Assembly (NCBI GenBank): GCA_048013815.1
Contig: CM106585.1
Coordinates: 3,224,001-3,288,000 of the forward strand
Origin: Setoptus koraiensis
Taxonomy: Eukaryota; Animalia; Arthropoda
DNA: 64,000 nucleotides
Direction of reading: 5' to 3'
The position numbers were made by a program, and so were the translations under genes. Shown in pieces: positions 10,082 to 63,999 of this stretch (position 1 is its first letter; the number at the start of each line of letters is the position of its first letter). The notes below the pieces were generated by a model that saw only the letters and a list, made by a program, of their open reading frames with translations, did no database searches and was not told the origin of the DNA.

Positions 10082-10146
10082 CCAGTTATATTTCTTTTTC
10101 ACGTTGTGTTATTGTTTTTCGTCAACCAAATCTTCTTTTTTGAAGT

Positions 10147-33208: not shown

Positions 33209-33712
33209 TTTATCGGTTTGGATGTGCTTGAGCGATGAGAATATTCTCTCTGTGTTGGCGGATGAAGGCCTGAGCTGGGCCAATCTCGAGGCAATATTTT
33301 TGAATTTTGATCTTTTTTGGTGCTTGGCAGGCAAGGTATATTGGCCTCGTTGGGAGCGATAAAGCTGGAACTCGTCCAGCGTGGCGAAGCTCTCCTTCTC
33401 GCTAGCGCCCATTATTGTGCTGATGTCTGTTAATTTCAGTCCAATTTTCTTGTGCGCATCGTCTGTTAGTTTATCAGTCTTGCAAGATAGATCACAACTC
33501 AGGCAAGTCATCAACAAATCTAGGTCACATTTGGAGAAGTGGTAAAGAAACGAATCAAATATGTCCTGCCTGAATTTCTTCTTGAGTGTTGATCCACGGT
33601 ACAGTTCTAAGCCAAACTGTATGAATTTTTCGAACGCTTTGGAAAGCTTGGAATCTCTACCCTCGCTGTAGGCAATGAGCTCACAAAGAGGCTCATACAC
33701 AGCACTCGTCTC
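33209..33712 (-). pseudogene. hAT transposase C-terminal fragment
   Basis: RPSSANTERIFSSL dimerization/catalytic-E motif; similar to KTSSANVERLFS of the intact hAT. Confidence 0.8.
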
Positions 33713-33825
33713 GGTTATAGTAGCGAACAGCGACCACGCCCAATTTGGGTATTTGGGGTATTTTTGGGTAGGGTATTGTACCCTGATACCCGAACAGGTA
33801 TTCCGGAAGTGCGGAAATTCTTCGT
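33713..33825 (-). mobile_element. Solo Merlin MITE end
   Basis: GGTTATAGTAGCGAACAGCGACC plus GGGTATT module, near-identical to 38721 onward. Confidence 0.8.
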
Positions 33826-47684: not shown

Positions 47685-50600
47685 TTGCCAGAACCGCAAT
47701 TCATACCACCTGACGAACAGAAAATACGAATGGTCATCAAGCCAGACGAATTCGATGGGACGCCATCGAAAGCTCGAGTTTGGTTCGACAACTACAGATT
47801 TTGCTGCAGCGTCAACGAGTGGTCAGACTATACGGCATGCAAACGTTTACCAGCATATCTCACAAAATCAGCGAGAAACTGGTTCGTTTCCATGATAGCT
47901 GGTAAGCCTGAAGCAGTCATGTTCGACAGATTGGAAAAGGCGTTCTATGACGAATATGTCCCAAGAAGCTACAGAAACGAGATAAGAATGGAGCTTAATG
48001 CTCTGAAACAACAACCAGGTGAGCCCGTTACAAATTTTATAACGGACGCGAACAAGTTGTGTGAAGATTACGACCCTAAGATGTCAGAGTTAGACAGGGT
48101 AGACAAAATCATTGACAAACTGTTGCCGGTATTCTTCCCCAACATAATGGAAGACGACCCGCAGACAGTAGCCGAGCTTAAAACAAAGGCAGTGAAACTG
48201 GAGCATGGCCTCAAGAAAAGAGGAACGGTTGCAGTAACTGCAGTGGTGAAAAATAGATCAATCAAATGCTATAACTGCCAGGAGATTGGGCATTACAAGT
48301 CGGAGTGTCCCAAGCCAGTTAAAGCGAGATTCGATAAGAATAAGAAACGTGTCGACGAAACTAGCAAAAAGGAAGCAGGTAAAGCCAAGAACAAGGCTTG
48401 CTATATTTGCAAAGAGGTAGGACATTTCAAGGCTGATTGTCCCAAGAAAGAAAGAAAAGAAGAAAAGACGCCGCAAGCTAACACAAGTGTCAAGACGAGA
48501 TACAGTATAAATGCTCTCCAACCGATATTACCCACAAGGTGCTTGGTGGTGATAAAAGGAGAGAGCATTGAAGCAACGGAAGACGGCGGTGCAGCAGTAT
48601 CCGTGATAAACGGCGAAATAGCCAGGAGGCTGAAGCTACCACAGAAAAAGAATGTTGGTGGAATCGCGCTGCAAGATGCAAATGGTAGATCGCTCAACAT
48701 AACAACAACGACAGTGGAGATGAAAGTTATATTGAACGGTCAAGAAAAGAATTGTGTTCAAACTATTGCCGTGTCGGACGATAGTCCCTTCAAATTCTTG
48801 GTAGGGAAAGACGTACTACACAAGCTGAACATAGTTTCCGACCACGGTGAAAACAAGCTTTACTTTAAGAGTAAAACGAGACCTAAATCAACCGGCGGTA
48901 TCTTTACGATCGCGCCGACCAAAATTCCTAAGCTGTCAACGGAATGGGTAAAAGTTGATTTTGCCGGCAAACCGGAATGCCGTGACGCGCTTGTATCACC
49001 AGATAGAAGAGACGACAGGGCGCTTACGCCATACGGTTTGTGTGACGGGTCCAAACAGAAAGCCATACTGTTTTCGAACCCGACAACAAAAGACATTGTA
49101 TTGCGTCAACGAGAAAGAGTCGCGTCTTGGAGAGACCTCAAGAAGATAGACGATCATACGAATATTCCTATCAACGCCATAATCCCATACAACGAGGATG
49201 TAGGGATAGAGATAGGCGACGAGCTGAAAGACGAAGAAGTGAAGCAGATAATGAGTTTGCTTCACGAGTTTGATGACGTCTTAGATACGGGTAACAAGCT
49301 CGGTAATTGTGAGCTTATAACCCACAAAATTGAATTGGTTGACGAAAGGCCAATAGCTCAACCAATGCGACGCTATTCAGAGGCAGAAAAGCAGGAGATA
49401 GAAGCTCAAACGAAAAGCATGCTCGAACAGGGCGTCATCAGGCCCTCATACAGTGAATGGGCATCGCCTATAGTACTCGTGCCCAAACGAGGAGGGGGCA
49501 CGAGATTCTGTGTAGATTATAGAGCCCTAAACAGCAAGACTAAAAAGTGGCCCTACCCTCTACCGAGGGTGGATGACAACATAGACAGTTTCAGAAAGAA
49601 AGTGCTATTCTCTCTGATAGACTGTAACCAAGGATTCTGGCAAATCAATATGGACGAGGAATCGATACCACTTACAGCATTTCGAACGCACATGGGTCAC
49701 TTCGAATTTGTGAGAATGCCCTTCGGGCTGTGTAATGCCGTATCAACGTACCAAAAACTTACAGACCTCATCTTCATGGGATTGAAGGGAATAGACTGCA
49801 TCGTCTATTTGGACGACGCAGCAATTGCCAGTACATCATTCGATAGCCACATAGCAGCCTTGAGAGAGGTTTTTCTAAGATTTAGAGACGCAGGGATGAC
49901 CATAAAGACATCCAAATCAAAGTTCGCGATGCAGAAAATCGACCTTCTTGGCCATCATATAAACAGTAGAGGCATTTATCCTTTACAGGATAAACTCAAG
50001 GCGATAAAAGAACTCCCTTACCCAACGGATGTCTCTGAAGTAAGACGATTCTTGGGGGGAATCGGGTACTACCGCCGATTCATCCCCAACTTCGCCCAAA
50101 TCAGCGGACCGTTGGCCGATTTGACAAAAAAAGGAGCAGAATGGCGGTGGACGAGGGAAGAAGCCCTTTCTTTCCACAAATTGGTGGGAACCTTGGTCAA
50201 ATCAGATGGTATCGCGCACTTCGATCCGAATGCGACGACAATAATTAAAACCGACGCCAGCCGAACGGGCATAGGCGCGATTCTATTGCAGGGAGAGTCG
50301 CATGGAGATCAGAAAATTGTCGCATGCGCCAGCAGGCGCCTCTCGAACTCGGAAGCCAAGTACCCGGTAACCGAGCTTGAAGCGCTTGCTATAGTGTTCG
50401 CCTGCAACAAATTTAGGCCATACATACTGGGCAGAGAGGCCATCATATACACCGACCACTGTGCCCTCTGTGCGATGAACGAAAAAAAGGACTTACCGAG
50501 AAGGATAGCAAACTGGGCTATTCAACTCCAAGAGTTCTCGCTGAAAATTAAGTATGTCTCCGGGAAAGAGCACGCAGATGTTGACTGCCTTTCCCGGGCA

Positions 50601-53600
50601 CCGGTCGAGCCGTATGAAATAGCTGAGAGATGCCTCTACCCATGCCATCTGGTCATACCAGCAGATGGAGAACGGTGGAAAGCGGAGGCTAGTAAAGACC
50701 CACATCTGGCGACGGCTATCAAACTAGCCGAAATGGGCAGCAGCACGGACAAAACAATTAACGGAATTTTATACTCCCACGAGAATAAATTAATCGTCCC
50801 TGCTAGCATGGTTCACGAGATAATAAAATCAGTCCATGAAGACAATCTCAATGCCCATCCGGGAGTGGTCAAAACCGAAGAAATGATAAGATCTCAATAT
50901 AAATGGCCAAACATGTCGAAGGATATAGGTGATTTTATAGGACAGTGCGAAAAGTGTTTGAGAAGAAAAACTACGAACACAAGTCGCCAGGGCCTAATGC
51001 ACAGCGTAGTAGCAGATGGCCCCTACGAGATGGTCGCGATCGACATTATTGGAGAACGAAAAAAGACTGCGAGACAGAACACATATATAATTGTCGCAGT
51101 CGACATCTTCTCAAGAATGGTCGAAGCTAAAGCTATTAAGAACACAAGTTCTAGAGCAATTGCTAAATTCATAGTGGACAGAATCGTATGTCGCCACGGG
51201 GCGCCAATTAAACTACTCACAGATAATGCCAGCGGGTTCGTGAGCGCGGCAATAAAAGAAGTAACGAGGCTATTAGGTTGCAACCAACTACAGTGCGCTC
51301 CATACCACCATCGTGGGAATGGGGTAGTAGAGCGAACAAACAGGAGCCTGCAAGACAAAATAGCATTGTTAATAACAGACCAGGATGAGTGGGACGACGT
51401 ATTACAGATGGCTGTGTTTGCCTTGAATAAAGCAACTTCTCGCAGCACTAAATTTAGCCCATTTGAAATAATATATGGCAGAAGCCCGAGAATGCCATCT
51501 GATACGACAGAACTGACGTCCCCAGACAAATACGCAGAGAGTCTGGCAGTTCGTCTAGAACTGATAAGGAGCATGGCCGCAGACAATGATAAAGAGAGCA
51601 AAGAAAAGTCGAAGGCTAGATTCGACGAAAACCGTAGAACCGTAAAATTCCAGGAGAACGATAAGGTTCTCTGTTGCTTCCCTCCTAGAGGAGCTGCAGA
51701 TCAAAAGTTGGACGACCGTTATTTCGGCCCGTACACAGTAATGGCAGCTAGAGACAACGACATCTACAAGCTCAAACTCGACGATCCAAATTCTAAAAAG
51801 AAGCGGACAATTATTGCCCATGTTAGTAGGTTAAAAGCCTACAACATTGAACAAAGCGGTACGCAGATGTCGGCCCAATTAAACCCAACAGACGGACACC
51901 AGATGTCTTCAAGTCGCCGAACAACTGGCCCCGTCGCGTATCTGGGTTTGATCATGGGTTGCTTGGCAGTATTGTTGCCTGGAGCGAATGCGGAATTCAA
52001 TCCGGTCGATCCCGTGCTATGGGTCGCCACAGAAATTCCGCATGTCGCGTCACAAACAGACTGGAACATCGACATCACTCTGGAAGACCCTTGTAAGGTA
52101 CTGTTCACTAACATAAGCGGTTCTAGATCGATGGATGCAGCGATAATTAAGAGTTGTGAAAACAGGTATAATGAAATAATAATTGCCAACTTAGACAAGT
52201 TGTGCCCAGAAAAGGTAGGGCACGCTGTAAACAGACGATTCATCTTCGAGGTGTCGATGCTGACGGCAATCACGGTGACAACAATGCTGACAGCTGTCAC
52301 AAAAATAGTGGATGTCCCAGCAGTGGACAAAAGAGTAGACCTTATAACCGAAAAAGCGAACCAATTGGTTGAACTAACCAACAAGGTAACAAGAGACTTG
52401 GAGGTAATACGACTCAACACTATTAACACGAATAAGGTAGTCGCGACACATCTCGATAGAGTCATAGAGGATCTGGAGTTCGTGTCAGGCCTAGTACAAA
52501 ACCAACCGCGAGTCGCAGATCTATTAGCTATGACATACCAAAAATTCTCTAAAGCAGCGCAACAATTAGAGCGAATTGCGAATGATTTCGAAGAGAAAAA
52601 GACGGTATCGAGAGAATTATTCAACCTAATCAACGAAACGCGCCTTTTCGATCTTAAGATGGAGAAGTACACCGTATTCAAGAAATGTAACCGCCTGAGT
52701 TCGAACAGAATTGAAATATCGGTCACAATTCCTAAAAGAAGTAAAGAGATGACGATATTTAAAGCGGACGCCTTCGAATTCTGGAACATTACAGCCGAAG
52801 ATATGTGCTTGAAACAGTATAAAGAGCCAGAGTATGTACTGTTCAATGCCACATCGGACTGTATGCTGTCCATCAAATCTACTGATATAAGCAATGAAGT
52901 GCTAAGAGGCAAAGCATGCCAACTCAGACAAAGGTTAAGTCCAAACGAAACAGTTTGGGTGACAAAAAAATGCGTTCCCAAAGAAACAAATAAAGAAACG
53001 ATCAAGATGGACAGTATCAAACATTATGAAAGCAGACATTTTATCAACTGCCAGTTTAATAAAATAAGCACAAACCACAAAGAGCACGATTGCCCGAACT
53101 TTGTGTTCTCAATTGCAGAGACAGAAAGCTTTAATATAGGAAGCTATTACTACGTGCATCAATCAGCCCACATGACGCCCATGGTGACGATGCTAACGAC
53201 GGCACCAGAACGTATAAATCTCCAGCTGGCCACAAACGGTATCCGATTTTCCAACGAGATAACGACCCATATTGAGAAGTTGGAATCACTAACCCCAACA
53301 CCAATGGTCGCCCCACTTAATACAACTGGTGAGAAAGACAAATACTTTGACTTGTTTGGAGCCAGAGAGATGTATTATAGAGTCGAAGAGTGGCTAAAAA
53401 CAGGGTACCGCATGACCGTTACAGTAATAGCGGTTATATGCCTACTTACCCTGTATCCAGTAGTTAAATTAATGTGGCTAGTAGTAGCATGGCCCGTAAG
53501 AATTGCTACAAACAGATCGAGCCTACTACTACCGACCCAAAACGTCCAAATGAGAAACTATCAGAGACGAAACTGGTACGCACCAGTTTCAATTAACAGG

Positions 53601-53612
53601 AGAATCGATTGA
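47685..53612 (+). CDS. gag-pol-env: Gag(partial)-PR-RT-RNaseH-IN-Env polyprotein
   Basis: Two CCHC knuckles, EDGGA protease, YLDD, KTDAS, integrase, signal YLGLIMGCLAVLLPGANA, VNRR site, TM VTVIAVICLLTLYPVVKLMWLVVAW; no ATG at the start (junction). Confidence 0.93.
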   Translation: MPEPQFIPPDEQKIRMVIKPDEFDGTPSKARVWFDNYRFCCSVNEWSDYTACKRLPAYLTKSARNWFVSMIAGKPEAVMFDRLEKAFYDEYVPRSYRNEIRMELNALKQQPGEPVTNFITDANKLCEDYDPKMSELDRVDKIIDKLLPVFFPNIMEDDPQTVAELKTKAVKLEHGLKKRGTVAVTAVVKNRSIKCYNCQEIGHYKSECPKPVKARFDKNKKRVDETSKKEAGKAKNKACYICKEVGHFKADCPKKERKEEKTPQANTSVKTRYSINALQPILPTRCLVVIKGESIEATEDGGAAVSVINGEIARRLKLPQKKNVGGIALQDANGRSLNITTTTVEMKVILNGQEKNCVQTIAVSDDSPFKFLVGKDVLHKLNIVSDHGENKLYFKSKTRPKSTGGIFTIAPTKIPKLSTEWVKVDFAGKPECRDALVSPDRRDDRALTPYGLCDGSKQKAILFSNPTTKDIVLRQRERVASWRDLKKIDDHTNIPINAIIPYNEDVGIEIGDELKDEEVKQIMSLLHEFDDVLDTGNKLGNCELITHKIELVDERPIAQPMRRYSEAEKQEIEAQTKSMLEQGVIRPSYSEWASPIVLVPKRGGGTRFCVDYRALNSKTKKWPYPLPRVDDNIDSFRKKVLFSLIDCNQGFWQINMDEESIPLTAFRTHMGHFEFVRMPFGLCNAVSTYQKLTDLIFMGLKGIDCIVYLDDAAIASTSFDSHIAALREVFLRFRDAGMTIKTSKSKFAMQKIDLLGHHINSRGIYPLQDKLKAIKELPYPTDVSEVRRFLGGIGYYRRFIPNFAQISGPLADLTKKGAEWRWTREEALSFHKLVGTLVKSDGIAHFDPNATTIIKTDASRTGIGAILLQGESHGDQKIVACASRRLSNSEAKYPVTELEALAIVFACNKFRPYILGREAIIYTDHCALCAMNEKKDLPRRIANWAIQLQEFSLKIKYVSGKEHADVDCLSRAPVEPYEIAERCLYPCHLVIPADGERWKAEASKDPHLATAIKLAEMGSSTDKTINGILYSHENKLIVPASMVHEIIKSVHEDNLNAHPGVVKTEEMIRSQYKWPNMSKDIGDFIGQCEKCLRRKTTNTSRQGLMHSVVADGPYEMVAIDIIGERKKTARQNTYIIVAVDIFSRMVEAKAIKNTSSRAIAKFIVDRIVCRHGAPIKLLTDNASGFVSAAIKEVTRLLGCNQLQCAPYHHRGNGVVERTNRSLQDKIALLITDQDEWDDVLQMAVFALNKATSRSTKFSPFEIIYGRSPRMPSDTTELTSPDKYAESLAVRLELIRSMAADNDKESKEKSKARFDENRRTVKFQENDKVLCCFPPRGAADQKLDDRYFGPYTVMAARDNDIYKLKLDDPNSKKKRTIIAHVSRLKAYNIEQSGTQMSAQLNPTDGHQMSSSRRTTGPVAYLGLIMGCLAVLLPGANAEFNPVDPVLWVATEIPHVASQTDWNIDITLEDPCKVLFTNISGSRSMDAAIIKSCENRYNEIIIANLDKLCPEKVGHAVNRRFIFEVSMLTAITVTTMLTAVTKIVDVPAVDKRVDLITEKANQLVELTNKVTRDLEVIRLNTINTNKVVATHLDRVIEDLEFVSGLVQNQPRVADLLAMTYQKFSKAAQQLERIANDFEEKKTVSRELFNLINETRLFDLKMEKYTVFKKCNRLSSNRIEISVTIPKRSKEMTIFKADAFEFWNITAEDMCLKQYKEPEYVLFNATSDCMLSIKSTDISNEVLRGKACQLRQRLSPNETVWVTKKCVPKETNKETIKMDSIKHYESRHFINCQFNKISTNHKEHDCPNFVFSIAETESFNIGSYYYVHQSAHMTPMVTMLTTAPERINLQLATNGIRFSNEITTHIEKLESLTPTPMVAPLNTTGEKDKYFDLFGAREMYYRVEEWLKTGYRMTVTVIAVICLLTLYPVVKLMWLVVAWPVRIATNRSSLLLPTQNVQMRNYQRRNWYAPVSINRRID

Positions 53613-53990: not shown

Positions 53991-54196
53991 ATCAAGATGT
54001 ACGACATCTTTCTTTTTTTAAGAAGGGGGATGTTGTATTATACATAAAATATCTGTAACTGTGCTGCGCACAGATCAATGTTGTGCCGGCACCACTTATG
54101 TGCCTAATCTGCGCACGACTATAAAAGTCGCGCGTTATATTCCAAATAAACAGACTTTTACATCGAACTCTTACAACACACAAAAAAGCAAGAGCG

Positions 54197-54646
54197 TAGT
54201 GATGGGGGGAGATCTCCCGCCACGGGAGAAATTTCTCCCGCCCAGGGAGAATTCTCCCGGGAGATTTTCTCCCTGGGAGCCTCCCGGGCTCTCCCGCTCC
54301 CGCGGATCTCCCGAGTCTCCCGAATGTCCCAATTTTCTCCCGAATCTCCCAAATTCTTCCCAAAACTCCCAAATTCCTCCCAAACCTCCCGAATGGACCA
54401 ACAGAAAATCAGAAATACAAAAAAAAAATGAAAAATAAACAAATATTCACTATTCTACTCAAGAAATTAAGCATATGTTTATTATTAGATTGATATTAGA
54501 ATGATATTAGAATGATATTAGAATGATATTAAAATGATATCAAAAGAAAAGAATGATTTAAGAAAAATCTCTTGCTAAATGAAATGTGGTTGTACGAACA
54601 ACACTCCTGCTATCTCATCCATGGCTATTCAGCATCGATTAGCTAA
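54197..54646. repeat. Left long TIR of the hAT element
   Basis: Inverted copy of 59431-59871; CTCCC-rich subterminal motifs; includes the last transposase codons. Confidence 0.9.
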
Positions 54647-57073
54647 ATCCATCACTGACCAACCCTGAGAGTCTTGCTGTTCCAGACTATCATCGTCGAA
54701 CCTACCAGCTTCAAGCTCAAATAGATGTAGAAAACTTGCCTCATCTGCGGAGATGCTCTCATCTATACTCTCTCCCCTCTCAATTCTTTGATCCAACAGT
54801 TCAACGTCGATTTCTTCTACGTATCCTCCGAAAGACTCCTCAAGTCTTCTATAATATCCTTCACTATCGATACTTCGACGTCCTTTGGCGGTTCTTCGCT
54901 GATTCTCATCTGTCTGGGCAAAATAGTACTTGAGTTTGGCCAGGTTTTCAAGAGTGTCTACCTCAAGACGATTGCGCTTGGCACTGTGTGCCCACTTAAG
55001 ATAGGAAAAAAGTCTTTCCACATTTGCGCTGGACGTCTTTATCGACAGGAGGCTGATCGCCAAATTCTTCAACAAGGATTTGGGCTTGAGGTACCACCAT
55101 TCCAGGGATCTCATCTTGTCCGACCTCGAATACTCGTAATGTGTCTGCTTTAAACGATATTTTCTTATCTCATCCGCTATTTTTCTTGCCATATTTTCGT
55201 CGAATTTAAGGTTATTCTTGACGTGATCGAATATCTTCACTTTGCTTCTTCTCATTGATTCGTCACTGAGAAATTGACAGTCGTACTTCGGATCAAGAAA
55301 GTACGTTGCCAGTAACAAATCCACATCAAGCTCATGAAATCGCTTCAGAAATATCTCAAAAGAATATTTACCGAAGTCGCACGACTTGTACTGACGTAGT
55401 TTTTTTGCCGCTCTCAGGTATTGATAAAGAAAGTCAGACAAACTACTACTGTCACTTTCAGCGACTCTAATAAGACTGTTGATCGGGTCTATCAGATGAA
55501 TTAGGTTTGTAACATGTTCCCAAAAAGACCTCTCCTTTGTATATTTTTCAATGCGAGTTCCAACTGCATGTGTCTTTATCGATAATTTGTTATGAGCGAC
55601 GGATTTCAAGAGGGCAAGAGCCGAGTACCATCGAACTTGAACAAAAGTTACCAAATTCGGAATCTTCTGAGCATGAGAAGGCGACGTTTTGAAGAACTTA
55701 ACTATTGATTTCGCTTTATCAAATGTCCTTTTCATGCCTTCGACATCAAATTGGTCTTGAATAATAAGATTGCAGTAGTGCGCCATGCACCTGTAACTTA
55801 TGATGCTTGGATATTCAGCTGCAAGATCATTGCGAGCTTTTTTTATGTTTGCCCCCTGGTCGGTGATTATTGATGATATGTTAGCATGACCAATCTCTTC
55901 AACCGCTAAGATCATCAACCTCTTGATGTAATTGGAGTCATGTCTGGCGCCGCTGTGATCGGTAACGCAGTAGACCATGCTACACCTATTCGGCAAAGCG
56001 AAATTAACAATGCAAGCGAATATGCTCCTCGAGCGAATATCCGACCAGAAATCGAATTCCAAAGACACTGTGTTGAATGAATCAGCTACCAGTTGTTTAA
56101 GATAGCTACCAGCCCTTCTTACATACTTGGGCATCAGTGTTTCCTTCACTCTGTTCCTGCTTGGTGGGAAATCTTTTGTATTCAGGGTCCCGAATATTTT
56201 CTTAAGATCTTCGGAGTCACATTCAAGAGGTAAAGCCTTGAGCACAATGTAACGCATCCACTTCTCCTCCATAGACTCCCGTTGTGAAACAACTCCCGTG
56301 CTACATTCGGGAACATTCATCATCAGGCTTTTTTCACGAACCGTCATTCGAGGGCACCTTTCCATCAAGTGTTGGATAAATCTGTCTTTTTGATAAGATT
56401 GCCAGGTTTGGTTGCATTTCCTGCATTGTGCTGCCAGATGGGCATTATTTCTAGCAGAGTTGAATTTCCTAACATATTTTTTTATGTCAAAGAAGTCTCG
56501 CGTTGGTTGGTTTTCGATGTCGTCGCCAGCATTTTCATTTTCATTTTCATCTCCATCTTCAACTTCATCTTCATCTTCATCTTCATTCTCATCTTCATTC
56601 TCATTTTCATTCTCATTTTCATTTTCATCTTCGTTTTCGTTTTCATCTTCGTTTTCATTCTCGCTGCTACATTCGTTTAGTCGATTGCTAGAGGGTGAAA
56701 CCTGACCAAATGGATACAATACTTGCGAACGACGGGAACCAGACGGTGTGGGTTCGACTATTTGGTCGAGCATAGCATCGTAGCATTCTTGATGGTAAAA
56801 TTTCTTCGGATTGCTTGCTGGACTTCCTACGTAATTTTCTCCTTCAATCAATTGCTTACAATCGTCACACTGTTTAGACATCTTTCTATACGTATCTTCT
56901 TGTTTGCCTCTATCCAACTTGTTATTTATATAAATCATGCGAAGTCTATAGATCGAATACAAAAACATCAATAAGTAGAACATGACTGAATTATGGGCAT
57001 CTAACAAATCGACTCTTATAGTGAAAGACTGTCTAGTACTGATGATGTCATCAAAAATCATGCCTTTAGACAA
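54629..57073 (-). CDS. hAT-family transposase, 814 aa, intact
   Basis: BED-like finger (CRKC...HLMERC), EFDFWSD, ITDQGAN, CMAH, RWYS, SSANVERLFS; acidic EN/ED-repeat linker. Confidence 0.93.
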   Translation of the reverse strand: MSKGMIFDDIISTRQSFTIRVDLLDAHNSVMFYLLMFLYSIYRLRMIYINNKLDRGKQEDTYRKMSKQCDDCKQLIEGENYVGSPASNPKKFYHQECYDAMLDQIVEPTPSGSRRSQVLYPFGQVSPSSNRLNECSSENENEDENENEDENENENENENEDENEDEDEDEVEDGDENENENAGDDIENQPTRDFFDIKKYVRKFNSARNNAHLAAQCRKCNQTWQSYQKDRFIQHLMERCPRMTVREKSLMMNVPECSTGVVSQRESMEEKWMRYIVLKALPLECDSEDLKKIFGTLNTKDFPPSRNRVKETLMPKYVRRAGSYLKQLVADSFNTVSLEFDFWSDIRSRSIFACIVNFALPNRCSMVYCVTDHSGARHDSNYIKRLMILAVEEIGHANISSIITDQGANIKKARNDLAAEYPSIISYRCMAHYCNLIIQDQFDVEGMKRTFDKAKSIVKFFKTSPSHAQKIPNLVTFVQVRWYSALALLKSVAHNKLSIKTHAVGTRIEKYTKERSFWEHVTNLIHLIDPINSLIRVAESDSSSLSDFLYQYLRAAKKLRQYKSCDFGKYSFEIFLKRFHELDVDLLLATYFLDPKYDCQFLSDESMRRSKVKIFDHVKNNLKFDENMARKIADEIRKYRLKQTHYEYSRSDKMRSLEWWYLKPKSLLKNLAISLLSIKTSSANVERLFSYLKWAHSAKRNRLEVDTLENLAKLKYYFAQTDENQRRTAKGRRSIDSEGYYRRLEESFGGYVEEIDVELLDQRIERGESIDESISADEASFLHLFELEAGRFDDDSLEQQDSQGWSVMDLANRC

Positions 57074-57581
57074 TTTTCAACTCGGTGTAGATTTCCATAG
57101 TTGAAAGGAATATTTCATCGACAGTAAGCCTCCTAGCTAATGTATCGCACGTGTCATTTACATGTCAAGACAATGGGCCAACTAGCGACCCAAATTCAGA
57201 TCAAACAAAACAGATTAAGCTTATTCCTACAATGCCTATCACGTCTGATTTTCAGCTTTTGGAAAACTTGCAAAATATCTCCCAAGTTTTGTAGGAGCGT
57301 TGTTCACGTGATGAACACGATCTAGATGTACAATGTTTACCCAACCCGATCACGATCGGTTTTTTTGCTTGAATATTATAATTGTACAAATTTTTTGGAC
57401 ATCAAGACCAAAGTGCCTGACAAATCTAGTCGAAATCAAATAGGTAAATCGCGGATTTGACCTTAACAATAACCTTCTAGAATGCAAAGCAAGGAAGATT
57501 CAATTTTCAGATAACTGTTTTGAAATCCGAGTTGAAAGATTTGAAGGGAAGTTAATATAAATTACAAAGATTGAGCTCATT

Positions 57582-57800
57582 ACAAGTTCAATAATTAAAC
57601 TGACAACAAGTTCAATAATCAAACTGACAACAAGTTCAATAATCAAACTGACAACAAGTTCAATAATCAAACTGACAACAAGTTCAATAATCAAACTGAC
57701 AACAAGTTCAATAATCAAACTGACAACAAGTTCAATAATCAAACTGACAACAAGTTCAATAATCAAACTGACAACAAGTTCAATAATCAAACTGACAACA
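57582..57800. repeat. 24-bp tandem repeat x9
   Basis: TGACAACAAGTTCAATAATCAAAC at 24-bp period, ending about 17 nt before the env ATG. Confidence 0.95.
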
Positions 57801-57816
57801 AATTCATTTGGAAGAA

Positions 57817-59418
57817 ATGGCTAGAATTTTGCCTATGCTACTATTGGTAATCTTCATGTTTGGAGACACCGGGAGCGTCCTTGATCAAGCAGAGGAATTT
57901 GAACGAGTTTCGTCAATCCGTTGGATCAGTCAGGAAAAATTTGCACTACACAGCGTGGACACTTGGATTAATTCTATCCACTACAGAAACCCTTGTGGTT
58001 CCGTCAACTTCAGCTCAGCCGCTAAGGATTCGTATTTATCGATTTGCAACGAAATGTTCGATCGTAATCTAGTCAATTGCCTGCGATTCTGCACTCCAAC
58101 CATCCAACGAGACACCATTCTGAATATCCGATACACAAGAGACATACGTCATACGTTCTCAGATGTCCTCGAGTACATAAGCGACTTCTTCCCCGGACTG
58201 GTATCTAAACCAATTTTTAAGGTTGCCGACATTCTCATCGATGGGATCTCTAAATTTTGGGCGAGCTCTGCGTCACGCCCTTTAGCATCATTAGAGGAAG
58301 CCGAATCAGAATCACAACGGCAAGGTATGCTTCTTAGAGCTGAATCTTCTCTGGTTGGTACATCTAAAGCAAATCTAAAACTAAATGTGATTGACGACTC
58401 ATACTCTTTCTGGGATATATTCTCGAGCTCGAGAATGCAGCAATTGCTCGAAATGCAGACGGTGAAAGCCGTCAATCTTTCAAGTACAGTATTGAGTTTG
58501 CACGAAATCAAAGAGGCCCTCGACGACATACGACAAAATTGGCAGAGAGGAAAGCTCAGTCCGAAATTTTACGACCTCGTTGGACGAGAAAGGGTTTGTG
58601 GATCGAGTCAATGTGACTCAGCTCGCCCAATAAGCTGTACACTCGACGAGCGTAACCAGAAGGCTACATTTTATTATGTTGCGCCATTGTTTTCGAATGA
58701 AATTCAATTGTTCAAGGCCCACTCCTTTAAATTTTTTACCAAGATAGGACAGAAATATTGCATGAAAAAATACATTGGACCCAGTTATGTATATTTTGAT
58801 ACTGCGAAGGGTTGTATTTTTCCAGCTAACGAATTGGACTCAGTGAAGGATTCGTTCCCGATAGGGAAGTGCTCGAGAGGGTTTACTAAACACAGTGGAT
58901 ACTCTTGGGAGCTGGGGAATTGCAGAAAAACAGCAGAGAAAGCTCTTGAATTGGCAAAGCCATCCGTATTGTACGAGAATGATGAAACGATAGTATGGTG
59001 CTACCTCAGAAAGATCAAGATCGAAGGGTCTCTTTATGATTGCCCAGACTATGTTTTTCGATTGCAAAAGGATATAGAATTTCTTATTGATGGTGTGGGA
59101 TATAGGAATTTACTGCCACGCTCATTCTTATCCAACAATCCAATCGAATCAGTTTTATCACCGAACGATGATATAGATACAGAAGATATCGATAGTGACT
59201 TCACTATGACGGATCTTTATCTAGCTTTGGGTTTGATTGCATTATTTTTAATATTGTCGATAGGTGGAGCCTACATCAGGTATTATATCAAGACTAGAAA
59301 CAAACGCGATCAAGCTAGGATGCGCGAGTCTCTAGATGAAGAGGTTCAAGTGAGTGTTTTAGAAAATCTCACCCGGATGAGACACAGCCGAGACCACCGC
59401 GTCGAAACAGACGTTTGA
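57817..59418 (+). CDS. Env-like type I membrane glycoprotein (533 aa from ATG 57817), homologous to the retrotransposon env domains in this window
   Basis: Signal MARILPMLLLVIFMFG, RYTR furin-like site, Cys pattern and blocks (TW...RNPC; WQRGK; YCMKKYIGPSY; IKIEGSLYDCPDYVFRL) aligning with element B env (TW...RSPC; WRSGM; PCLQEYVGDSY; ITVEGKLRQCPPYVFKL); TM LYLALGLIALFLILSIGGAYI. Confidence 0.9.
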   Translation: MARILPMLLLVIFMFGDTGSVLDQAEEFERVSSIRWISQEKFALHSVDTWINSIHYRNPCGSVNFSSAAKDSYLSICNEMFDRNLVNCLRFCTPTIQRDTILNIRYTRDIRHTFSDVLEYISDFFPGLVSKPIFKVADILIDGISKFWASSASRPLASLEEAESESQRQGMLLRAESSLVGTSKANLKLNVIDDSYSFWDIFSSSRMQQLLEMQTVKAVNLSSTVLSLHEIKEALDDIRQNWQRGKLSPKFYDLVGRERVCGSSQCDSARPISCTLDERNQKATFYYVAPLFSNEIQLFKAHSFKFFTKIGQKYCMKKYIGPSYVYFDTAKGCIFPANELDSVKDSFPIGKCSRGFTKHSGYSWELGNCRKTAEKALELAKPSVLYENDETIVWCYLRKIKIEGSLYDCPDYVFRLQKDIEFLIDGVGYRNLLPRSFLSNNPIESVLSPNDDIDTEDIDSDFTMTDLYLALGLIALFLILSIGGAYIRYYIKTRNKRDQARMRESLDEEVQVSVLENLTRMRHSRDHRVETDV

Positions 59419-59430
59419 TATTTTGAGATA

Positions 59431-59871
59431 TAGCTAATCGATGCTGAATAGCCATGGATGAGATAGCAGGAGTGTTGTTCGTACAACCACATTTGATTTA
59501 GCATGATATTTTTCTTAAATCTTTCTTTTCTTTTGATATGATTTTAATATCATTCTAATATCATTCTAATATCTATCTAATTTCAATGAATTAATAAACA
59601 TATGCTTATTTTCTTGAGTAGAATAGTGAATATTTGTTTATTTTTCATTTTTTTTTTTGTATTTCTGATTTTCTGTTGGTCCATTTGGGAGATTTGGGAG
59701 AAATTCGGGAGGTTTGGGAGGAATTTGGGAGATTCGGGAGAAAATTGGGACATTCGGGAGACTCGGGAGATCCGCGGGCGCGGGAGAGCCCGGGAGGCTC
59801 CCATGGGTGAATCTCCCGGGGAGCGGGAGATGTTCTCCCATGGGCGGGAGATCGATCTCCCCCCATCACTA
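59431..59871. repeat. Right long TIR of the hAT element
   Basis: Inverted copy of 54197-54646. Confidence 0.9.
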
Positions 59872-60120
59872 CAAGAGCGAATCATTTCAACTTACCACGC
59901 GTTAGCACAAAGTTGAGAAAATCGTCTCAAGTCTATCAGGATGCCGGATGTAGATTAAAGTCATCGATATAAAGGCAACAAAAGAGAGCTGCAAGCTAGA
60001 CCAACTGTCTTTGAATTTTTATTCACGAAATAACTATCACTAATGATCTCTCACACACATACTATGTCATTTGTAGCGAAGTGGCTAATATCAATTTATC
60101 GCTACGGTTCCATTGAAGAT

Positions 60121-63100
60121 TCATGGTGCAACAGAAGCAGCTTTTGCTGCCAACTGCTTTGCCTCGTCAACAGAACCTAATTTACCACCACTATCTTTAT
60201 CCTGTTTGGGTATAAGTTTAGCCACGTTTGGAGGGACAAATCCTTTACCTTTGATAGCTTCTTTGATCAACGGGTTCGAGGTCAGGTTGGTCGCAGCGAG
60301 TTGTTGATGTTGTCCTTCAGAGGACTTTGAGTTCCTACTAGAACTGGTAGTTGCACTCTCTGATTTCTTTTTATCATTTTTGTCACTCTTTTTATCGTCA
60401 TCTTTTGACTTCTCATCGTCATCAGAATCAACCTTTTTTGTCTTCTCATCTGCGTCGATCTTGTCGCTTTTGGAGTCCTCTTCAGTGTGGCGTTTATTTT
60501 TGATATGTGAATCATCAGATTTGGCCGAATTATCAGAGGAGCCTTTAGAGTATTTGTCTGACGGCTTCTCTGTCGATTCTGTTATTGTGCTAGCAGTTTC
60601 TTTCTCACTATTTGAGGGCTTCGCTGTGCTAGGGTTTGTTTCTTTCGTTGTTTCTATGACCGAACTACGACTACCACCACTCTCGTTAAGCCGAGACTCA
60701 TCATGTTTGTGCTTTCTCTTGCCGAATGACAGTCGTATGGGCCTATCATCGTCTTTGTCAAGTGGCTCGCCGTCATCGCCTTCATCGCTGGCAAACACAT
60801 TAAGAAGATCGTTGAATGCTTCACCGATATACCCAAACAGATCATTGTCTTTGTGATGCTTCTTTCTTTTCTTTTTCTTGTGTTTCCTACCAGGCTTCTC
60901 TTCTCTATCCTCCTCGTCTAGTGAACTTCTACTACCCGATTTAAGTGATACAGAAGCGTCAGCCGACCCGCCAGCCGATGCGCTAGCATTCACTTTCACT
61001 TGCGACGACTTATCAGACTTGTCCTTCTCATAACTGCTTAGCTTATTCTTTGTAGTCTGTGATCCCTCCGATGAAGATCGCAATTTTTCACGTAGTTGAG
61101 CCACAAGTCGTTTCAATTCTCTGAGTTTTTTAGTAAGCTGGGCTTTAGTTGAATGACGAATGTCGTCATCATCATCGTCAGTATCACTGTATTCCTCATC
61201 GTTCTTCTCATCCTTGTTCTTGAACATATTTTCAACAGGTTTTGCCAAAGCATCGACTGGCTTCATAGCGACGTCGTGAATTTTATCTAGAGTATTTATG
61301 ACTGGATTTTTCTTATCCTTTTCGAGACCCATAATTTTATCTATTGGTTTCATAGCAAACTCTAATGGAGCTTGAGCGATCTTGTGCAGAGTATCGAATC
61401 CTTTGACAGTCACACTTTTGTCGTCTTTTTCCTCTTGATGCTCTTTCTTGTCAGCCTTTCTCTCTCCATCCTCATTATCCCTTCCTTTGAACATTGACTC
61501 TATCGGCCTAGCTACGGTATTGATTGCAGACTTTGTCATGTTGTGTATGGCATCGCCTGTCGACAAAATAGGATTCCTCTTGCCATCTTTATCAAGACCT
61601 AGTAGGTGATCAGTGGAATTGACCAACATCTCTACAGGTTTCTGACCTATTTCGTGCGCTTTATCTAGCACCTTACCGGTGAATGTTTCATCGTCTTTCT
61701 TATCACCATCAGCACCTTCTTTAGGCCTCTTTTCGTCTCTATCTTTCTTAGTTCTGCTGTCACTTTTCAGATCATTATTCTTCTCAGTTATGTCCGAATG
61801 TGCTGAAGCGCTTACTTTTACAGTGCTGGCACCATTAGATTGGTCAGACTTTTTTTTTTCGTCCTCATTATCCCTTCCTTTGAACATTGACTCTATCGGC
61901 CTAGCTACGGTATTGATTGCAGACTTTGTCATGTTGTGTATGGCATCGCCTGTCGACAAAATAGGATTCTTCCTGCCTTCTTTATCTAGACCGAATAGGT
62001 GATCAGTGGAATTGACCAACATCTCTACAGGTTTCTGACCTAATTCGTGCGCTTTATCTAGCACCTTACCGGTGAATGTTTCATCTTCTTTGGAGCGCTT
62101 CTCATCCTCCCTAGATCGCGACTTGTTTTCTCTCAGTTTCTCGTCCTCTCGCAACATTTTATCACCGTCCCCTTTATCGTCGTTTCCTTTGAACATTGAC
62201 TCTATCGGCCTAGCTACGGTATTGATTGCAGACTTTGTCATGTTGTGTATGGCATCGCCTGTCGATAAAATAGGATTCCTCTTGCCATCTTTATCAAGAC
62301 CTAGTAGGTGATCAGTGGAATTGACCAACATCTCTACAGGCTTTTGGCCCACTTCGTGCATTTTATCCAAAACTTTACCAGTGAATGTTTCATCATCTCT
62401 CTTCTCACTCTCAGCGCCTCCTTTTGGCCTCTTTTCGTCTTCTTCTTTCTTACTTCTGCTGTCACTTTTTAGATCATTATTCTTCACAGTTCTATCCGAA
62501 TTTGCGGATACGCTCGAACCCGAACCACTTGAACCAGTAGAGTAAGAATGTGCTGAAGCGCTAGAACCTGAATTGCCTGAGCCAGTAGAGTAAGAATGTG
62601 CTGAAGCGCTTGAACCCGAACCGCCTGAACCTGAACCGCTTGAACCCGAACCGCCTGAACCAGTAGAGTAAGAATGTGCTGAAGCGCTTGAACCTGAACC
62701 GCCTGAACCGGTAGCGCTAGATTGTGCTGAAGCGCTTGATTTTATAGTGCTGGCACCACTAAAGTGGTCGGATTTTCTATCTTCACTTCTTTCATCTTTC
62801 TTCGCCTCCTCTTTCTTCTTATATCCATCTTCTTTAGAAGATTCTTTCTGATGATCATGCGAATCTGAATCAAATCTCATTGTACTGTTTGCTAGATCTT
62901 CGATTGGTTTTGCAATCATGTCTATTGGGGCCTTAATTGTCTCATGTATTGCATCGGCAGTCTTCAGTATTGGATCGTTCTTCTTATCGCTATTAAACAA
63001 CTTATGCCCGGGTTCTAATATTTTTTCCAAAGGAACCTTGCCAATGTCATGTATTTTATCGAACACTCTGGCCGTTTGAGATTCATTGTTTCGCCTTTCA

Positions 63101-63999
63101 ATGGCATCGCCTTTGATAAGTGATTCCAATGGCCTCGCCATAGAGTCTATGGGCTTTTTGGCCATATCGTGCAACTTTTGCTCGGTGGTTACAAGGGAAT
63201 GATTGGTATCTTTTTTATCGAGTCCAACCAAATGATCGACGCGCTCCAGCATTGCGTCTCTTGGCCTCTTGACATAGTCATGATACTCGTCGAACAATTT
63301 TGCAGTTTCTGTTTCGTTTTGCGTCTTTTCATGACCAATCTTCTTTTCTTGTTCATGTCCTTTTGGGAGCATCTCTTTAGTCTCTTTCAGTTTGTCCATC
63401 ATCTCTTCCTTCTTTTCATCAAATTTGTCATATTTTTGATGTTTATAACTGGTCTTGGAATCTGATTGACTTTCAATCTTCGCTGAAGCCACAGCCACAG
63501 TTGATCTGCTAGATGGCTCCTGAGTGGTCTTCGAAGAAGTGTCACTACTAGTGTCAATATTGCTCTTCATAGAGTTTTTTTCGGGATGCTGAGTAGTTGT
63601 AGACTCATCGCCCCGACTTGGCTGTCGAGTTGTACCAGTAGTAGCTTTATCAATAAATCTGCCTATCGGTTCAGTTATATTGCGCAATGCAGAAGACCTT
63701 GAATCAGACTCGCGAATTTCCCTTCTTGAACGGACGTTCGCCACCTGTAATGCGCTATTGGAGGTGATTGATCGCTTCCTTCTATCTTTGTGCAGTAATT
63801 TCTGCAATGGATCAGTCAATAGAGACAGAGGATTGTTGCCGTTGTCTTTCGAATGACTATTATCTTGTTTGTCTTTATTTTTGCTGATTTTCTCGATCGT
63901 GATGATAAGCTCTTGCTTCTTCTTTGTTCCTTTCTCCTCAGTCAAGCCCAATGGGCCGTCTTTATTGACCATCACGACGGGTTTTGGTCCAGGATTCAA
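60121..63999 (-). CDS. Large intronless, highly charged repetitive protein of unknown function (5' end outside window)
   Basis: More than 1290 open codons; three near-identical about 70-aa repeats (DETFTGKVLDK...NPILSTGDAIHNMTKSAINTVARPIESMFKG) plus degenerate copies, SASAHSYSTGSG repeats, poly-K and poly-D tracts. Confidence 0.85.
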   Translation of the reverse strand: MNPGPKPVVMVNKDGPLGLTEEKGTKKKQELIITIEKISKNKDKQDNSHSKDNGNNPLSLLTDPLQKLLHKDRRKRSITSNSALQVANVRSRREIRESDSRSSALRNITEPIGRFIDKATTGTTRQPSRGDESTTTQHPEKNSMKSNIDTSSDTSSKTTQEPSSRSTVAVASAKIESQSDSKTSYKHQKYDKFDEKKEEMMDKLKETKEMLPKGHEQEKKIGHEKTQNETETAKLFDEYHDYVKRPRDAMLERVDHLVGLDKKDTNHSLVTTEQKLHDMAKKPIDSMARPLESLIKGDAIERRNNESQTARVFDKIHDIGKVPLEKILEPGHKLFNSDKKNDPILKTADAIHETIKAPIDMIAKPIEDLANSTMRFDSDSHDHQKESSKEDGYKKKEEAKKDERSEDRKSDHFSGASTIKSSASAQSSATGSGGSGSSASAHSYSTGSGGSGSSGSGSGGSGSSASAHSYSTGSGNSGSSASAHSYSTGSSGSGSSVSANSDRTVKNNDLKSDSRSKKEEDEKRPKGGAESEKRDDETFTGKVLDKMHEVGQKPVEMLVNSTDHLLGLDKDGKRNPILSTGDAIHNMTKSAINTVARPIESMFKGNDDKGDGDKMLREDEKLRENKSRSREDEKRSKEDETFTGKVLDKAHELGQKPVEMLVNSTDHLFGLDKEGRKNPILSTGDAIHNMTKSAINTVARPIESMFKGRDNEDEKKKSDQSNGASTVKVSASAHSDITEKNNDLKSDSRTKKDRDEKRPKEGADGDKKDDETFTGKVLDKAHEIGQKPVEMLVNSTDHLLGLDKDGKRNPILSTGDAIHNMTKSAINTVARPIESMFKGRDNEDGERKADKKEHQEEKDDKSVTVKGFDTLHKIAQAPLEFAMKPIDKIMGLEKDKKNPVINTLDKIHDVAMKPVDALAKPVENMFKNKDEKNDEEYSDTDDDDDDIRHSTKAQLTKKLRELKRLVAQLREKLRSSSEGSQTTKNKLSSYEKDKSDKSSQVKVNASASAGGSADASVSLKSGSRSSLDEEDREEKPGRKHKKKKRKKHHKDNDLFGYIGEAFNDLLNVFASDEGDDGEPLDKDDDRPIRLSFGKRKHKHDESRLNESGGSRSSVIETTKETNPSTAKPSNSEKETASTITESTEKPSDKYSKGSSDNSAKSDDSHIKNKRHTEEDSKSDKIDADEKTKKVDSDDDEKSKDDDKKSDKNDKKKSESATTSSSRNSKSSEGQHQQLAATNLTSNPLIKEAIKGKGFVPPNVAKLIPKQDKDSGGKLGSVDEAKQLAAKAASVAP

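Follow-up and report, generated by a model that had tools for sequence, protein, structure and literature searches.

An intact env-like gene inside a hAT transposon of Setoptus koraiensis

The element and its two genes

The window analyzed here, a 64,000-bp stretch of Setoptus koraiensis DNA (assembly GCA_048013815.1, contig CM106585.1), consists of elements nested in one another, in a patchwork dense in repeats, and is rich in LTR retroelements. One copy of a 5,675-bp hAT element is visible in it, at 54197-59871, bounded by perfect inverted tips of 18 nt and by an 8-bp target site duplication (TSD), CAAGAGCG. The left copy of the duplication (54189-54196) and the right copy (59872-59879), both read directly from the sequence, are identical and each adjoins a tip; the sequences to either side of the insertion occur nowhere else within the 64-kb window. 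The left tip, TAGTGATGGGGGGAGATC (54197-54214), is found as its exact reverse complement at 59854-59871. In a search of the 64 kb allowing up to three mismatches, the tip matched at two places only, both of them ends of the element, where 0.03 matches were expected by chance. Both tips begin with TAG, which fits the hAT rule that inverted termini start with YAG. The exact hAT ends and the 8-bp duplication of the original prediction are thus borne out. It does not mention that the termini are more than short inverted repeats: the inverted repeat runs inward for about 450 bp.

These longer arms (54197-54649 on the left, 59427-59871 on the right), which were delimited by inverted-repeat detection, tip search, hexamer density and tandem repeats, are 90-94% complementary. 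The outer ~220 bp of the left arm contain 13 GGGAGA/TCTCCC hexamers and the inner ~230 bp contain an 11-bp tandem repeat and a minus-strand AATAAA (54478-54483). The mirroring right arm, which closes on the second perfect tip, has 12 GGGAGA hexamers and a plus-strand AATAAA at 59593-59598, 175 nt past the env stop codon. The density of GGGAGA in the arms is 58 per kb as against 0.26 per kb in the rest of the window, a difference of about 200-fold, and to judge by other hAT elements these subterminal arrays are likely to be binding sites for the transposase.

An intact transposase gene occupies 54629-56881 on the minus strand. Its reading frame runs from an ATG at 56881 to a stop at 54629 (750 aa plus stop), with the final 21 nt lying inside the left arm. 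In Pfam the protein matched DUF659 (PF04937, 5.7e-17) and the C-terminal hAT dimerization domain Dimer_Tnp_hAT (PF05699, 1.1e-6; 28.8 bits against a cut-off of 21.4). The structure of the Hermes transposase in the PDB was matched at 4e-10, in an alignment that spans the second-Asp, CxxH, RW and Glu motifs; phmmer pairs TDQGAN, C-x-x-H, RW and SSANVERLFS with the corresponding segments of Hermes. FDFWSD, the first Asp motif, is not covered by the alignment with Hermes; it is conserved in P0154, a transposase encoded on a separate contig described below. Together with FDFWSD, we take these motifs to be the Hermes catalytic positions. Over its full length the window transposase is 40% identical to P0154, with every motif conserved, including a finger-like CxxC...H...C pattern for which there was no Pfam BED match. 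An acidic repeat is encoded near the N-terminus (56530-56659). Thus the full DDE transposase that had been predicted is present as an intact frame with both hAT-type domains and Hermes-like motifs. P0154 was the sole close relative recovered in our searches, the next matches being plant hATs at ~20% identity, and an alignment of the transposase found no relatives among viral contigs or JGI metagenomes.

The second gene, also intact, lies at 57817-59418 on the plus strand and is transcribed divergently from the transposase. It encodes an env-like protein of 533 aa plus stop, and its stop codon is 9 nt from the right arm. The region between the two divergent ATGs (56882-57816) is presumed to be a promoter region common to both genes. 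Within it, a 24-bp unit is repeated in tandem 9.4 times (57582-57806; score 436 and 99% matches in Tandem Repeats Finder), the array stopping 10 nt short of the env ATG. Because both stop codons adjoin the mirrored inner arms and each arm contains an AATAAA, the duplicated arm appears to serve as the 3' end for transposase and env genes alike.

An env gene in such surroundings could be what is left of a nested retroelement. This reading was rejected: seven retroelement polyproteins match the element, each through its env part alone, and we detected no gag, pol or LTR remnants and no long direct repeats within it, in agreement with the earlier observation that the env gene stands without them.

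The env protein and its relatives

The env protein has the features foreseen for it. Its hydrophobic N-terminus forms a probable signal peptide (approximately aa 1-21), and the only other hydrophobic 19-mers fall in a transmembrane segment at approximately aa 461-491, followed by a tail of ~40 aa, which gives a type I topology. There are 13 cysteines. A furin-type site, RYTR, is present at aa 105-108 (nt 58129-58140); it is a minimal R-x-x-R, whereas the same column in the family is usually R-x-K/R-R. A conserved PIF-x-VAD segment follows the cleavage site. In the alignment of the envs that we assign to hAT elements, this segment ranks with the most strongly conserved stretches of the protein, and four of the five members covering the region keep the furin-type site, the remaining one having no canonical site. 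Signal peptide, cleavage site, cysteines, heptad-type helices and membrane anchor are retained across this clade.

We modeled the protein with AlphaFold. The alignment-based model (pLDDT 79.7, pTM 0.63) has long helices at aa 136-243 and a beta-rich core at aa 270-430; a single-sequence model (pLDDT 41) was unusable. When the former was compared with the PDB by Foldseek, all 50 of the top 50 matches were F proteins, led by those of RSV, hPIV3, NDV and Nipah virus (E ~1e-8, probability 1.0). Against BFVD, the matches included glycoproteins of arliviruses, lispiviruses and chuvirus-related viruses, and baculovirus F/Ld130 (E 1e-8 to 1e-10). The TM-scores were low (0.2-0.37), as expected since the protein is long and multi-domain and its shape differs between states. 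A profile of the env family matched F0 chains of the PDB in register at the cleavage site, the fusion peptide and the first heptad repeat (E 1e-4). The env itself had no match in Pfam, the Fusion_gly and baculovirus F models included; one of 45 env relatives matched PF00523 weakly (0.0016), and a phmmer search of the PDB with the env returned noise only. By fold and profile, rather than by a curated family model, the env is predicted to be an F-type class I fusion glycoprotein, and the proposed class I fusogen resembles the F proteins of paramyxoviruses and pneumoviruses and that of baculoviruses.

The env has 170 homologues. Its sequence relatives are env domains of retroelements, Gypsy and Copia, from mites and springtails, and those that are named come from two mites and one springtail. 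Among 28 long homologues, 8 belong to Gypsy-type and 10 to Copia-type polyproteins; in L010, too, the env family is attached to a polyprotein. Within the window, tblastn aligned env aa 35-462 with 5296-4040 on the minus strand (E 5e-18, 21% identity) and aa 293-432 with 52731-53153 on the plus strand (E 2e-10), and the family profile spans the entire env domain of both of these Gypsy polyproteins. At least two Gypsy elements of the window therefore have a complete env domain of the same family, and the homology to a retrotransposon env that had been noted at the outset extends over whole domains. A word-indexed protein search and an exact-sequence lookup with the window env found nothing, nor did an alignment of the env find relatives in JGI metagenomes.

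A recent capture from the Gypsy elements of the window was considered and rejected. The hAT-clade envs are ~21-23% identical to those of the window Gypsy elements, and since the BLOSUM distances of 0.86-0.87 place the latter among the more distant members of the family, the env was not recently taken from them. We infer instead a single capture, the source being an LTR-retroelement env that belonged to the family found in mites and springtails.

Recurrence and constraint

The same arrangement is found outside the window. A Logan contig (L002) encodes the P0154 transposase on the minus strand and an env on the plus strand, that is, in the same divergent layout. Its products are ~35-40% (transposase) and ~32-35% (env) identical to those of the window; neither element end is present on the contig, and the window element alone shows full termini. 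Two metagenome contigs (L007 and L008) are 99.8% identical over the env and ~437 bp, after which their flanks differ. The sequence that they have in common ends in ...GCAGCACTA, and this terminus, TAGTGCTG, matches TAGTGATG of the window element. The two contigs represent a third lineage, inserted at two sites, in which the env lies beside a hAT terminus that matches. Another contig (L006) was rejected as support for the layout: its transposase and env fragments are on the same strand and indicate co-occurrence only. The search for other copies with both genes, proposed at the outset, is thus answered in part by L002, a distant relative, with L007 and L008 adding the env and a terminus at two sites.

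Both the layout and the distance from env to terminus are repeated in independent contigs from other samples. This bears directly on the concern that, in a patchwork of nested elements so dense in repeats, the locus might be an assembly chimera or a retroelement env remnant that came by chance to lie between two hAT ends. Such an artefact would also have to accommodate perfect tips, an exact duplication around the whole unit, an interior with no trace of gag, pol or LTR and an env stop codon only a few nucleotides from the arm. We consider it extremely improbable.

The envs assigned to hAT elements group together to the exclusion of all other envs (100/100 bootstrap). Within this clade, pN is 0.31-0.46 and pS 0.73-0.92; synonymous sites are saturated, so that dN/dS values are rough only. 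Between the window and the L002 lineage, dN is 0.62 for env and 0.61 for the transposase. The selection check that had been proposed for env thus gave a pN far below a saturated pS, and a dN about equal to that of the transposase. The picture is less uniform in one sample (SRR33593474), in which most related env copies change reading frame once; these copies are either decaying or poorly assembled. L007 and L008 have one frame change in common, yet occupy two sites; movement therefore does not depend on an intact env.

Cut-and-paste elements, hATs among them, are known to pick up foreign DNA, and the env might be a neutral passenger of this kind, acquired by chance capture or transduplication and intact only through the youth of the copy. 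Several related env copies are frame-shifted, and a broken env did not keep the element in L007 and L008 from moving or persisting, both of which fit such an origin. Nevertheless, the layout has been kept between proteins that are 35-40% identical, the hAT envs stand apart as a clade with full bootstrap support, and nonsynonymous change in env is constrained to the level of the transposase. A passenger would not be expected to retain signal peptide, cleavage site, cysteines and membrane anchor, nor would it account for two genes that are both fitted to mirrored arms. The neutral reading is already disfavoured by these data, and we hold it to be quite unlikely.

Our preferred explanation is that the window element is autonomous and belongs to a small hAT lineage that already had a viral F-type fusogen gene before its known branches split and has kept it as conserved cargo. 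We assign the whole of this explanation a probability of roughly 60%, and its parts differ in strength. The architecture and the lineage of the element are, with high confidence, as read here. The pattern of substitutions suggests that the env has probably been maintained by selection as a working glycoprotein. The recurrent layout, the exclusive clade, the constraint and the F-type fold agree in this respect with the original prediction of a captured env-type fusogen kept as hAT cargo.

Possible roles of a fusogen in a transposon

What the env does for its carrier is a separate matter. As the element is constructed, the transposase would mobilize the entire 5.7-kb unit, while the env, expressed from a promoter of its own, would form a trimeric type I membrane protein. 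Cleavage at RYTR would divide it into two subunits, the N-terminal one small and the other large and anchored in the membrane, as in other F-type fusogens, and the protein could render the cells that express it, or their vesicles, fusogenic. The element might then reach other cells (for example the germline from the soma) or other hosts, comparable to the role of env in errantiviruses and to that proposed for the fusogens of Mavericks. That the env serves transmission between cells or hosts is a tentative suggestion, to which we give somewhat less than even odds. A point against transmission is that the element lacks genes for a capsid or for packaging by which a fusogen could bring excised nuclear DNA or transposase to another cell. 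The stronger proposal, that capsid-less cut-and-paste transposons have become partly infectious through a captured class I fusogen, passing between cells or species by cell fusion or fusogenic vesicles, is speculative and on balance doubtful.

In vertebrates, domesticated env genes act by receptor interference. The hAT-borne env could likewise occupy or down-regulate the receptor of the related env-bearing Gypsy and Copia elements, which are abundant in this genome, to the benefit of the host and of the persistence of the element, the transposon being no more than the vehicle by which a protective gene is disseminated. Relevant targets exist in the window, namely the two or more Gypsy elements with a complete env of the same family, and the env is under constraint. 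The weakened R-x-x-R of the window copy and the clade member without a canonical site would be tolerable if only receptor binding counted. However, an identity of ~21-23% to the window Gypsy envs does not imply a common receptor. The cleavage site, the segment downstream of it, the heptad-type helices and the membrane anchor have all been kept, although interference alone would not need them, and a gene of benefit to the host would be expected to be fixed at one locus rather than to lie in a mobile unit at differing sites. We therefore regard interference as unlikely.

The env might also act in trans, by coating the particles of LTR retroelements whose own env is missing or defective, so that the elements travel together. 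The occurrence of one env family on Gypsy-type and Copia-type polyproteins suggests that it can serve particle-forming partners that are unrelated to one another and passes easily from class to class, and the window is dense in retroelements of these kinds. Yet the hAT element would gain no evident benefit, nothing in it links its DNA to a retroelement particle, and a co-distribution of hAT-env elements and retroelements is not in evidence. We give this possibility little credence.

Whether or not the env of this hAT lineage serves transmission, the combination of genes sets the element apart from known systems. It resembles Hermes, hobo, Ac and Tol2 in its 8-bp duplication, YAG termini, subterminal short repeats, dimerization domain and Hermes-like motifs. 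To our knowledge, these classical autonomous hATs have a transposase gene only and short inverted repeats, whereas the present element has ~450-bp arms and a second conserved gene of viral type. Errantiviruses, the env-carrying Ty3/Gypsy elements of insects and other metazoans, have an F-type env (Chary and Hayashi, PMC13524379) and share with the hAT element an F-type class I fusogen, a furin-type site, an RSV F-like fold and the acquisition of a viral fusion gene by a mobile element; that paper mentions neither hAT elements nor transposases. The carrier here is instead a DDE cut-and-paste element with inverted ends and an 8-bp duplication, without gag, pol, LTR, RNA intermediate or particle protein. 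A gained viral fusogen in a DNA transposon is also seen in nematode Mavericks/Polintons, which captured MFUS-1, a gain proposed to let them pass from one species to another (Widen et al., bioRxiv 10.1101/2022.07.12.499685). Mavericks, however, are virus-like, with genes for capsid, DNA polymerase and integrase and with a fusogen of class III (herpesvirus gB-like), in contrast to a 5.7-kb element with no capsid, a transposase as its sole mobility gene and a fusogen of the class I F type. Teratorn of medaka is reported to be (PMC10175614) a piggyBac transposon fused with a herpesvirus genome, ~180 kb in size and with a whole herpesvirus-like gene set. As portrayed there, it likewise combines a cut-and-paste transposase and viral genes in one mobile unit, whereas here a single viral-type gene resides in a small hAT element. 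We found no published description of a fusogen-carrying hAT transposon in the literature, in line with the initial statement that no cut-and-paste transposon with an env was known.

The capture of an env is the textbook step in the passage from LTR retrotransposon to retrovirus-like agent, and Mavericks are proposed to have become vectors of horizontal gene transfer through a fusogen. Env-bearing LTR elements and Mavericks build particles; a hAT element has only its transposase and naked DNA. With the present element, hAT joins Gypsy and Copia as a third class on which this F-type env family occurs. If capsid-less transposons of this kind have indeed become partly infectious, the hAT lineage would represent a third independent route to an extracellular or intercellular phase, after the capture of env by LTR elements and that of a fusogen by Mavericks. 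A fusogen conserved for so long in a hAT element would mean either that it aids the spread of a particle-less DNA transposon, which would bear on the frequent crossing of species by such elements, or that transposons may be long-term vehicles for env genes of an antiviral or helper type.

Anatomy of the hAT element

The element occupies 54197-59871 (5,675 bp). The 64-kb window has exactly two copies of the 18-mer TAGTGATGGGGGGAGATC, one at 54197-54214 and the other, in reverse complement, at 59854-59871; allowing up to 3 mismatches brought no further copy (chance expectation 0.03). An 8-bp target-site duplication, CAAGAGCG (54189-54196 and 59872-59879), abuts both tips on the outside, a length typical of hAT elements. 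The inverted repeat extends inward beyond the tips for about 450 bp (54197-54649 versus 59427-59871), with 90% complementarity in the outer part of the arms and 94% over the inner 231 nt. The outer ~220 bp of the arms contain 13 and 12 copies, respectively, of the hexamer GGGAGA/TCTCCC at a spacing of 9-11 bp, a density of 54-58 per kb compared with 0.4 in the element interior and 0.26 in the rest of the window. In studied elements, hAT transposases bind subterminal short repeats of this kind, and by analogy we infer that the arrays are putative transposase-binding sites. Each inner arm has an 11-bp tandem repeat and one AATAAA, at mirror positions 59593 (plus) and 54483 (minus). Among all the relatives described below, complete termini are visible in the window element alone.

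The transposase gene runs on the minus strand from an ATG at 56881 to a stop at 54629 and encodes 750 aa. Pfam identified DUF659 (5.7e-17) and the hAT dimerisation domain (1.1e-6), both exceeding the curated cut-offs. The sole match in a PDB search was Hermes transposase (4e-10), in an alignment spanning the motifs TD-x-GAN, C-x-x-H, RW and SSA-x-ER-x-FS. In Hermes, these motifs contain the second catalytic Asp and the catalytic Glu as well as the His and the Trp. The element's transposase also has the first Asp motif, FDFWSD, which is kept in the closest relative, the transposase P0154. The gene looks intact, and the element shows the other hallmarks of the hAT superfamily; for the BED finger, a CxxC...H...C pattern is shared with P0154, and Pfam gave no BED match. 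A hexanucleotide repeat within the gene (56530-56659) gives the transposase a long acidic stretch, rich in Asn, Glu and Asp, close to its N-terminus; because P0154 also begins with an acidic run, the stretch seems to have been retained rather than to be noise from slippage. Two further hAT-like transposase remnants, at 39647-40411 (plus) and 33206-33733 (minus), are ~25% identical to the element's transposase; they belong to different hAT families, and tblastn results gave no env adjoining them.

The env gene lies on the plus strand (57817-59418, 533 aa). The divergent start codons are separated by 935 bp, within which a tandem array of a 24-bp unit, with 9.4 almost perfect copies, ends 10 nt upstream of the env ATG. 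The transposase stop lies 21 nt within the left arm and the env stop 9 nt short of the right arm; therefore, both genes run directly into mirror-image sequence with a poly(A) signal. Judging from the sequence, this arrangement is built in, unlike the outcome of a random nested insertion. No gag, protease, reverse transcriptase or integrase remnant was found in the element, seven retroelement polyproteins matching only through their env parts, and no LTR-like direct repeat was found inside it. An LTR retroelement identity was rejected, there being no gag, pol or LTR trace. The original prediction had described exact hAT ends with an 8-bp duplication, a full DDE transposase and no gag, pol or LTR remnant; these were borne out by the tips and octamer, by the Pfam domains, Hermes-aligned motifs and FDFWSD, and by the polyprotein comparison and repeat search, respectively.

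On the minus strand, an open reading frame of 1,292 aa or more (60121-63999) begins 250 bp from the element and continues past the window end; it has no Pfam match, contains internal 300-nt and 48-nt repeats and shows a strong A-rich coding-strand skew, as in retroelement ORFs. Elsewhere, a eukaryotic 18S rRNA fragment (28992-29622, minus; Rfam RF01960, 223.8 bits, model positions 613-1116 only) is set in a repeat-rich region and is not a complete rDNA unit. There are 80-bp satellite arrays at 26426-26886 and 31438-32860, and one such array is bracketed by a 99% identical direct repeat (25946-26245 and 30958-31257, 5 kb apart), an arrangement suggestive of a segmental duplication or of a large repeat unit. 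Two pairs of blocks 32-33 kb apart (2176-2702/35696-36222 and 3359-3577/34994-35212) are 98-100% identical, one pair inverted and one direct, which indicates recent copies, in opposite contexts, of a single retroelement family.

The env protein and its retroelement relatives

The env protein begins with a hydrophobic stretch and ends in a basic tail; RYTR (aa 105-108) and a single transmembrane segment (~aa 461-491) lie between them, and the protein contains 13 cysteines. The predicted features of the divergent 533-aa reading frame are all present. Direct comparison with Pfam and with PDB sequences gave no match. When 1.84 billion representatives were scanned in full with HMMER, 170 homologues emerged, 22 of them below 1e-10, and many of the matches were to the C-terminal end of polyproteins of 1,100-2,700 aa. 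Among 28 long env-bearing homologues, the reverse transcriptase was of Gypsy type in 8 and of Copia type in 10. Named hosts of the family are the mites Leptotrombidium deliense and Halotydeus destructor and the springtail Orchesella dallaii. An alignment of 45 sequences contains a conserved R-x-K-R column (RYTR in the window env) and eight positions that hardly vary, of which five are cysteines.

An AlphaFold model built from this alignment was confident (pLDDT 79.7, pTM 0.63). When the model was compared with the PDB by Foldseek, a structural check that had been suggested at the outset, all of the top 50 matches were paramyxovirus or pneumovirus F proteins (best E 1e-8, probability 1.0). Matches in a viral structure library (E 1e-8 to 1e-10) include arthropod arlivirus, lispivirus and chuvirus-related glycoproteins and baculovirus F/Ld130. 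The family profile also matched F0 chains of the PDB (~1e-4), with the cleavage site, the fusion segment and the first heptad region aligned in register. By modelled fold, topology and cleavage site, the protein is thus assigned to the F-type class I fusion glycoproteins; no curated sequence model matches it.

Homology to retrotransposon env was confirmed within the window, where two Gypsy ORFs, at 3731-10102 (minus) and 47685-53612 (plus), have a complete domain of the same family at the C-terminal end (aa 1557-2122 and 1395-1957). These Ty3/Gypsy elements each consist of one uninterrupted ORF (2,123 and 1,975 aa) encoding gag, protease, reverse transcriptase, RNase H and integrase together with the complete F-type env domain, which is joined in frame to pol and is not a separate ORF. 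That the element's env is a helper for such resident LTR elements is improbable in our estimate. The same env family also occurs on a Copia-type element (RVT_2, gag_pre-integrs) on Logan contig 80885 of SRR33593474 (L010, 51-5617). Its env-bearing protein, P0080, is the closest relative of the env at 3731-10102 and has Copia-type genes beside it; env has therefore moved between element classes.

Recurrence and descent of the transposase-env pairing

The pairing recurs in another sample; a search for further copies with both ORFs had been among the checks suggested. A 4,184-bp contig of SRR33593474 (L002) carries P0154 (633 aa, minus strand), which has both Pfam domains of the window transposase, together with a plus-strand env homologue, in the same divergent arrangement as in the window. 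P0154 is 35-40% identical to the window transposase over its full length, including the acidic N-terminal stretch and C-terminal tail; the two envs are 32-35% identical. The contig ends within env and just beyond the transposase stop, placing the termini outside it, and its env spans two reading frames (one break). An artefactual pairing is highly improbable given this second occurrence.

Two contigs from different ENA metagenome assemblies (L007 and L008) are 99.8% identical over 1,260 bp, comprising the C-terminal part of a clade env (34-39% identity), with one frame change in common, and ~437 bp more. The common stretch ends ...GCAGCACTA, beyond which the sequences are entirely different; in the window, 453 bp separate the env stop from the terminus ...CATCACTA. 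In the inward direction, these ends read TAGTGCTG and TAGTGATG. The matching end at a like distance and the differing flanks therefore indicate a third lineage with env near a hAT end, at two insertion sites. Further clade env pieces were found on L003, L004 and L005 (SRR33593474) and L011 (ERR10899952), and an intact 503-aa gene on L001 (ENA ERZ28585498). L006, with transposase and env fragments on the same strand, was rejected as support for the layout and counted as co-occurrence only. The relatives lie on short contigs, and a single frame change affects each of several of them. SRR33593474 has at least five different contigs (L002-L006) with hAT-clade env, 27-50% identical to the window env, the frame being changed once in four of the five; that genome appears to have an old, diversified, mostly decaying population of hAT-env elements.

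In a neighbour-joining tree of 142 family members, built from their conserved core, one clade unites the window env with P0001, P0002 and P0003 (the env of L002) and includes none of the retroelement-fused envs of the tree (bootstrap 100/100 in a 40-taxon subset). A hAT transposase physically adjoins env in two of the four, the window env and P0003; P0001 and P0002, on short contigs, were placed with the hAT elements by similarity. The nearest outgroups are retroelement polyproteins. The window Gypsy envs are distant (BLOSUM distance 0.86-0.87), so the element's env was not a recent local capture. Between the window and L002 lineages, dN is practically equal for the two genes (env 0.62, transposase 0.61), as predicted for co-divergence from a single ancestor with both genes.

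Against its relatives the window env gives pS of 0.73-0.92, which is saturated, and pN of 0.31-0.46, and third codon positions are much less conserved than first and second. The proposed dN/dS check gave 0.14 for the closest pair, a rough value since synonymous sites are saturated. R-x-x-R is kept in four of the five clade sequences covering the cleavage column, and a P-I-F-x-V-A-D segment ~20 residues past the site is among the clade's best-conserved parts. The shared layout, the exclusive clade and pN far below saturated pS support the claim of the original prediction that a captured env is kept as cargo; we give little credence to a neutral passenger.

Possible roles of the glycoprotein

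The overall observation was confirmed and its reading supported: the element is genuine and intact, and belongs to a small hAT lineage bearing an F-type viral fusion glycoprotein gene. A full-text literature search, mostly of open papers, gave no description of env on a hAT or other DDE cut-and-paste transposon; such absence does not prove novelty, and the lineage is apparently undescribed. A survey of errantivirus env across metazoans reports F-type proteins in which the furin site is conserved and the fold resembles that of RSV F, the same kind as the element's, and makes no mention of hAT or transposases (PMC13524379). Among the closest cases are Mavericks, whose fusogen, proposed to enable cross-species transfer, is of class III, whereas the element's is class I F-type (bioRxiv 10.1101/2022.07.12.499685), and Teratorn, a piggyBac-herpesvirus fusion (PMC10175614).

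Autonomous hAT anatomy and an intact F-type glycoprotein gene are fitted and conserved together. The transposase would recognise the GGGAGA arrays and tips, move the whole unit and generate 8-bp duplications. The central region would drive both genes, with transcripts ending at the mirrored AATAAA, and env would enter the secretory pathway, form a trimer, be cut at RYTR and be shown on membranes. A receptor-interference or host-protective function for this conserved glycoprotein is unlikely. Although the element is without a capsid or packaging function, the main difficulty for a role in transmission, analogy with errantiviruses and the Maverick fusogen leads us to a tentative reading (probability roughly 0.35-0.4) in which env may be a fusogen that promotes transmission of the element.
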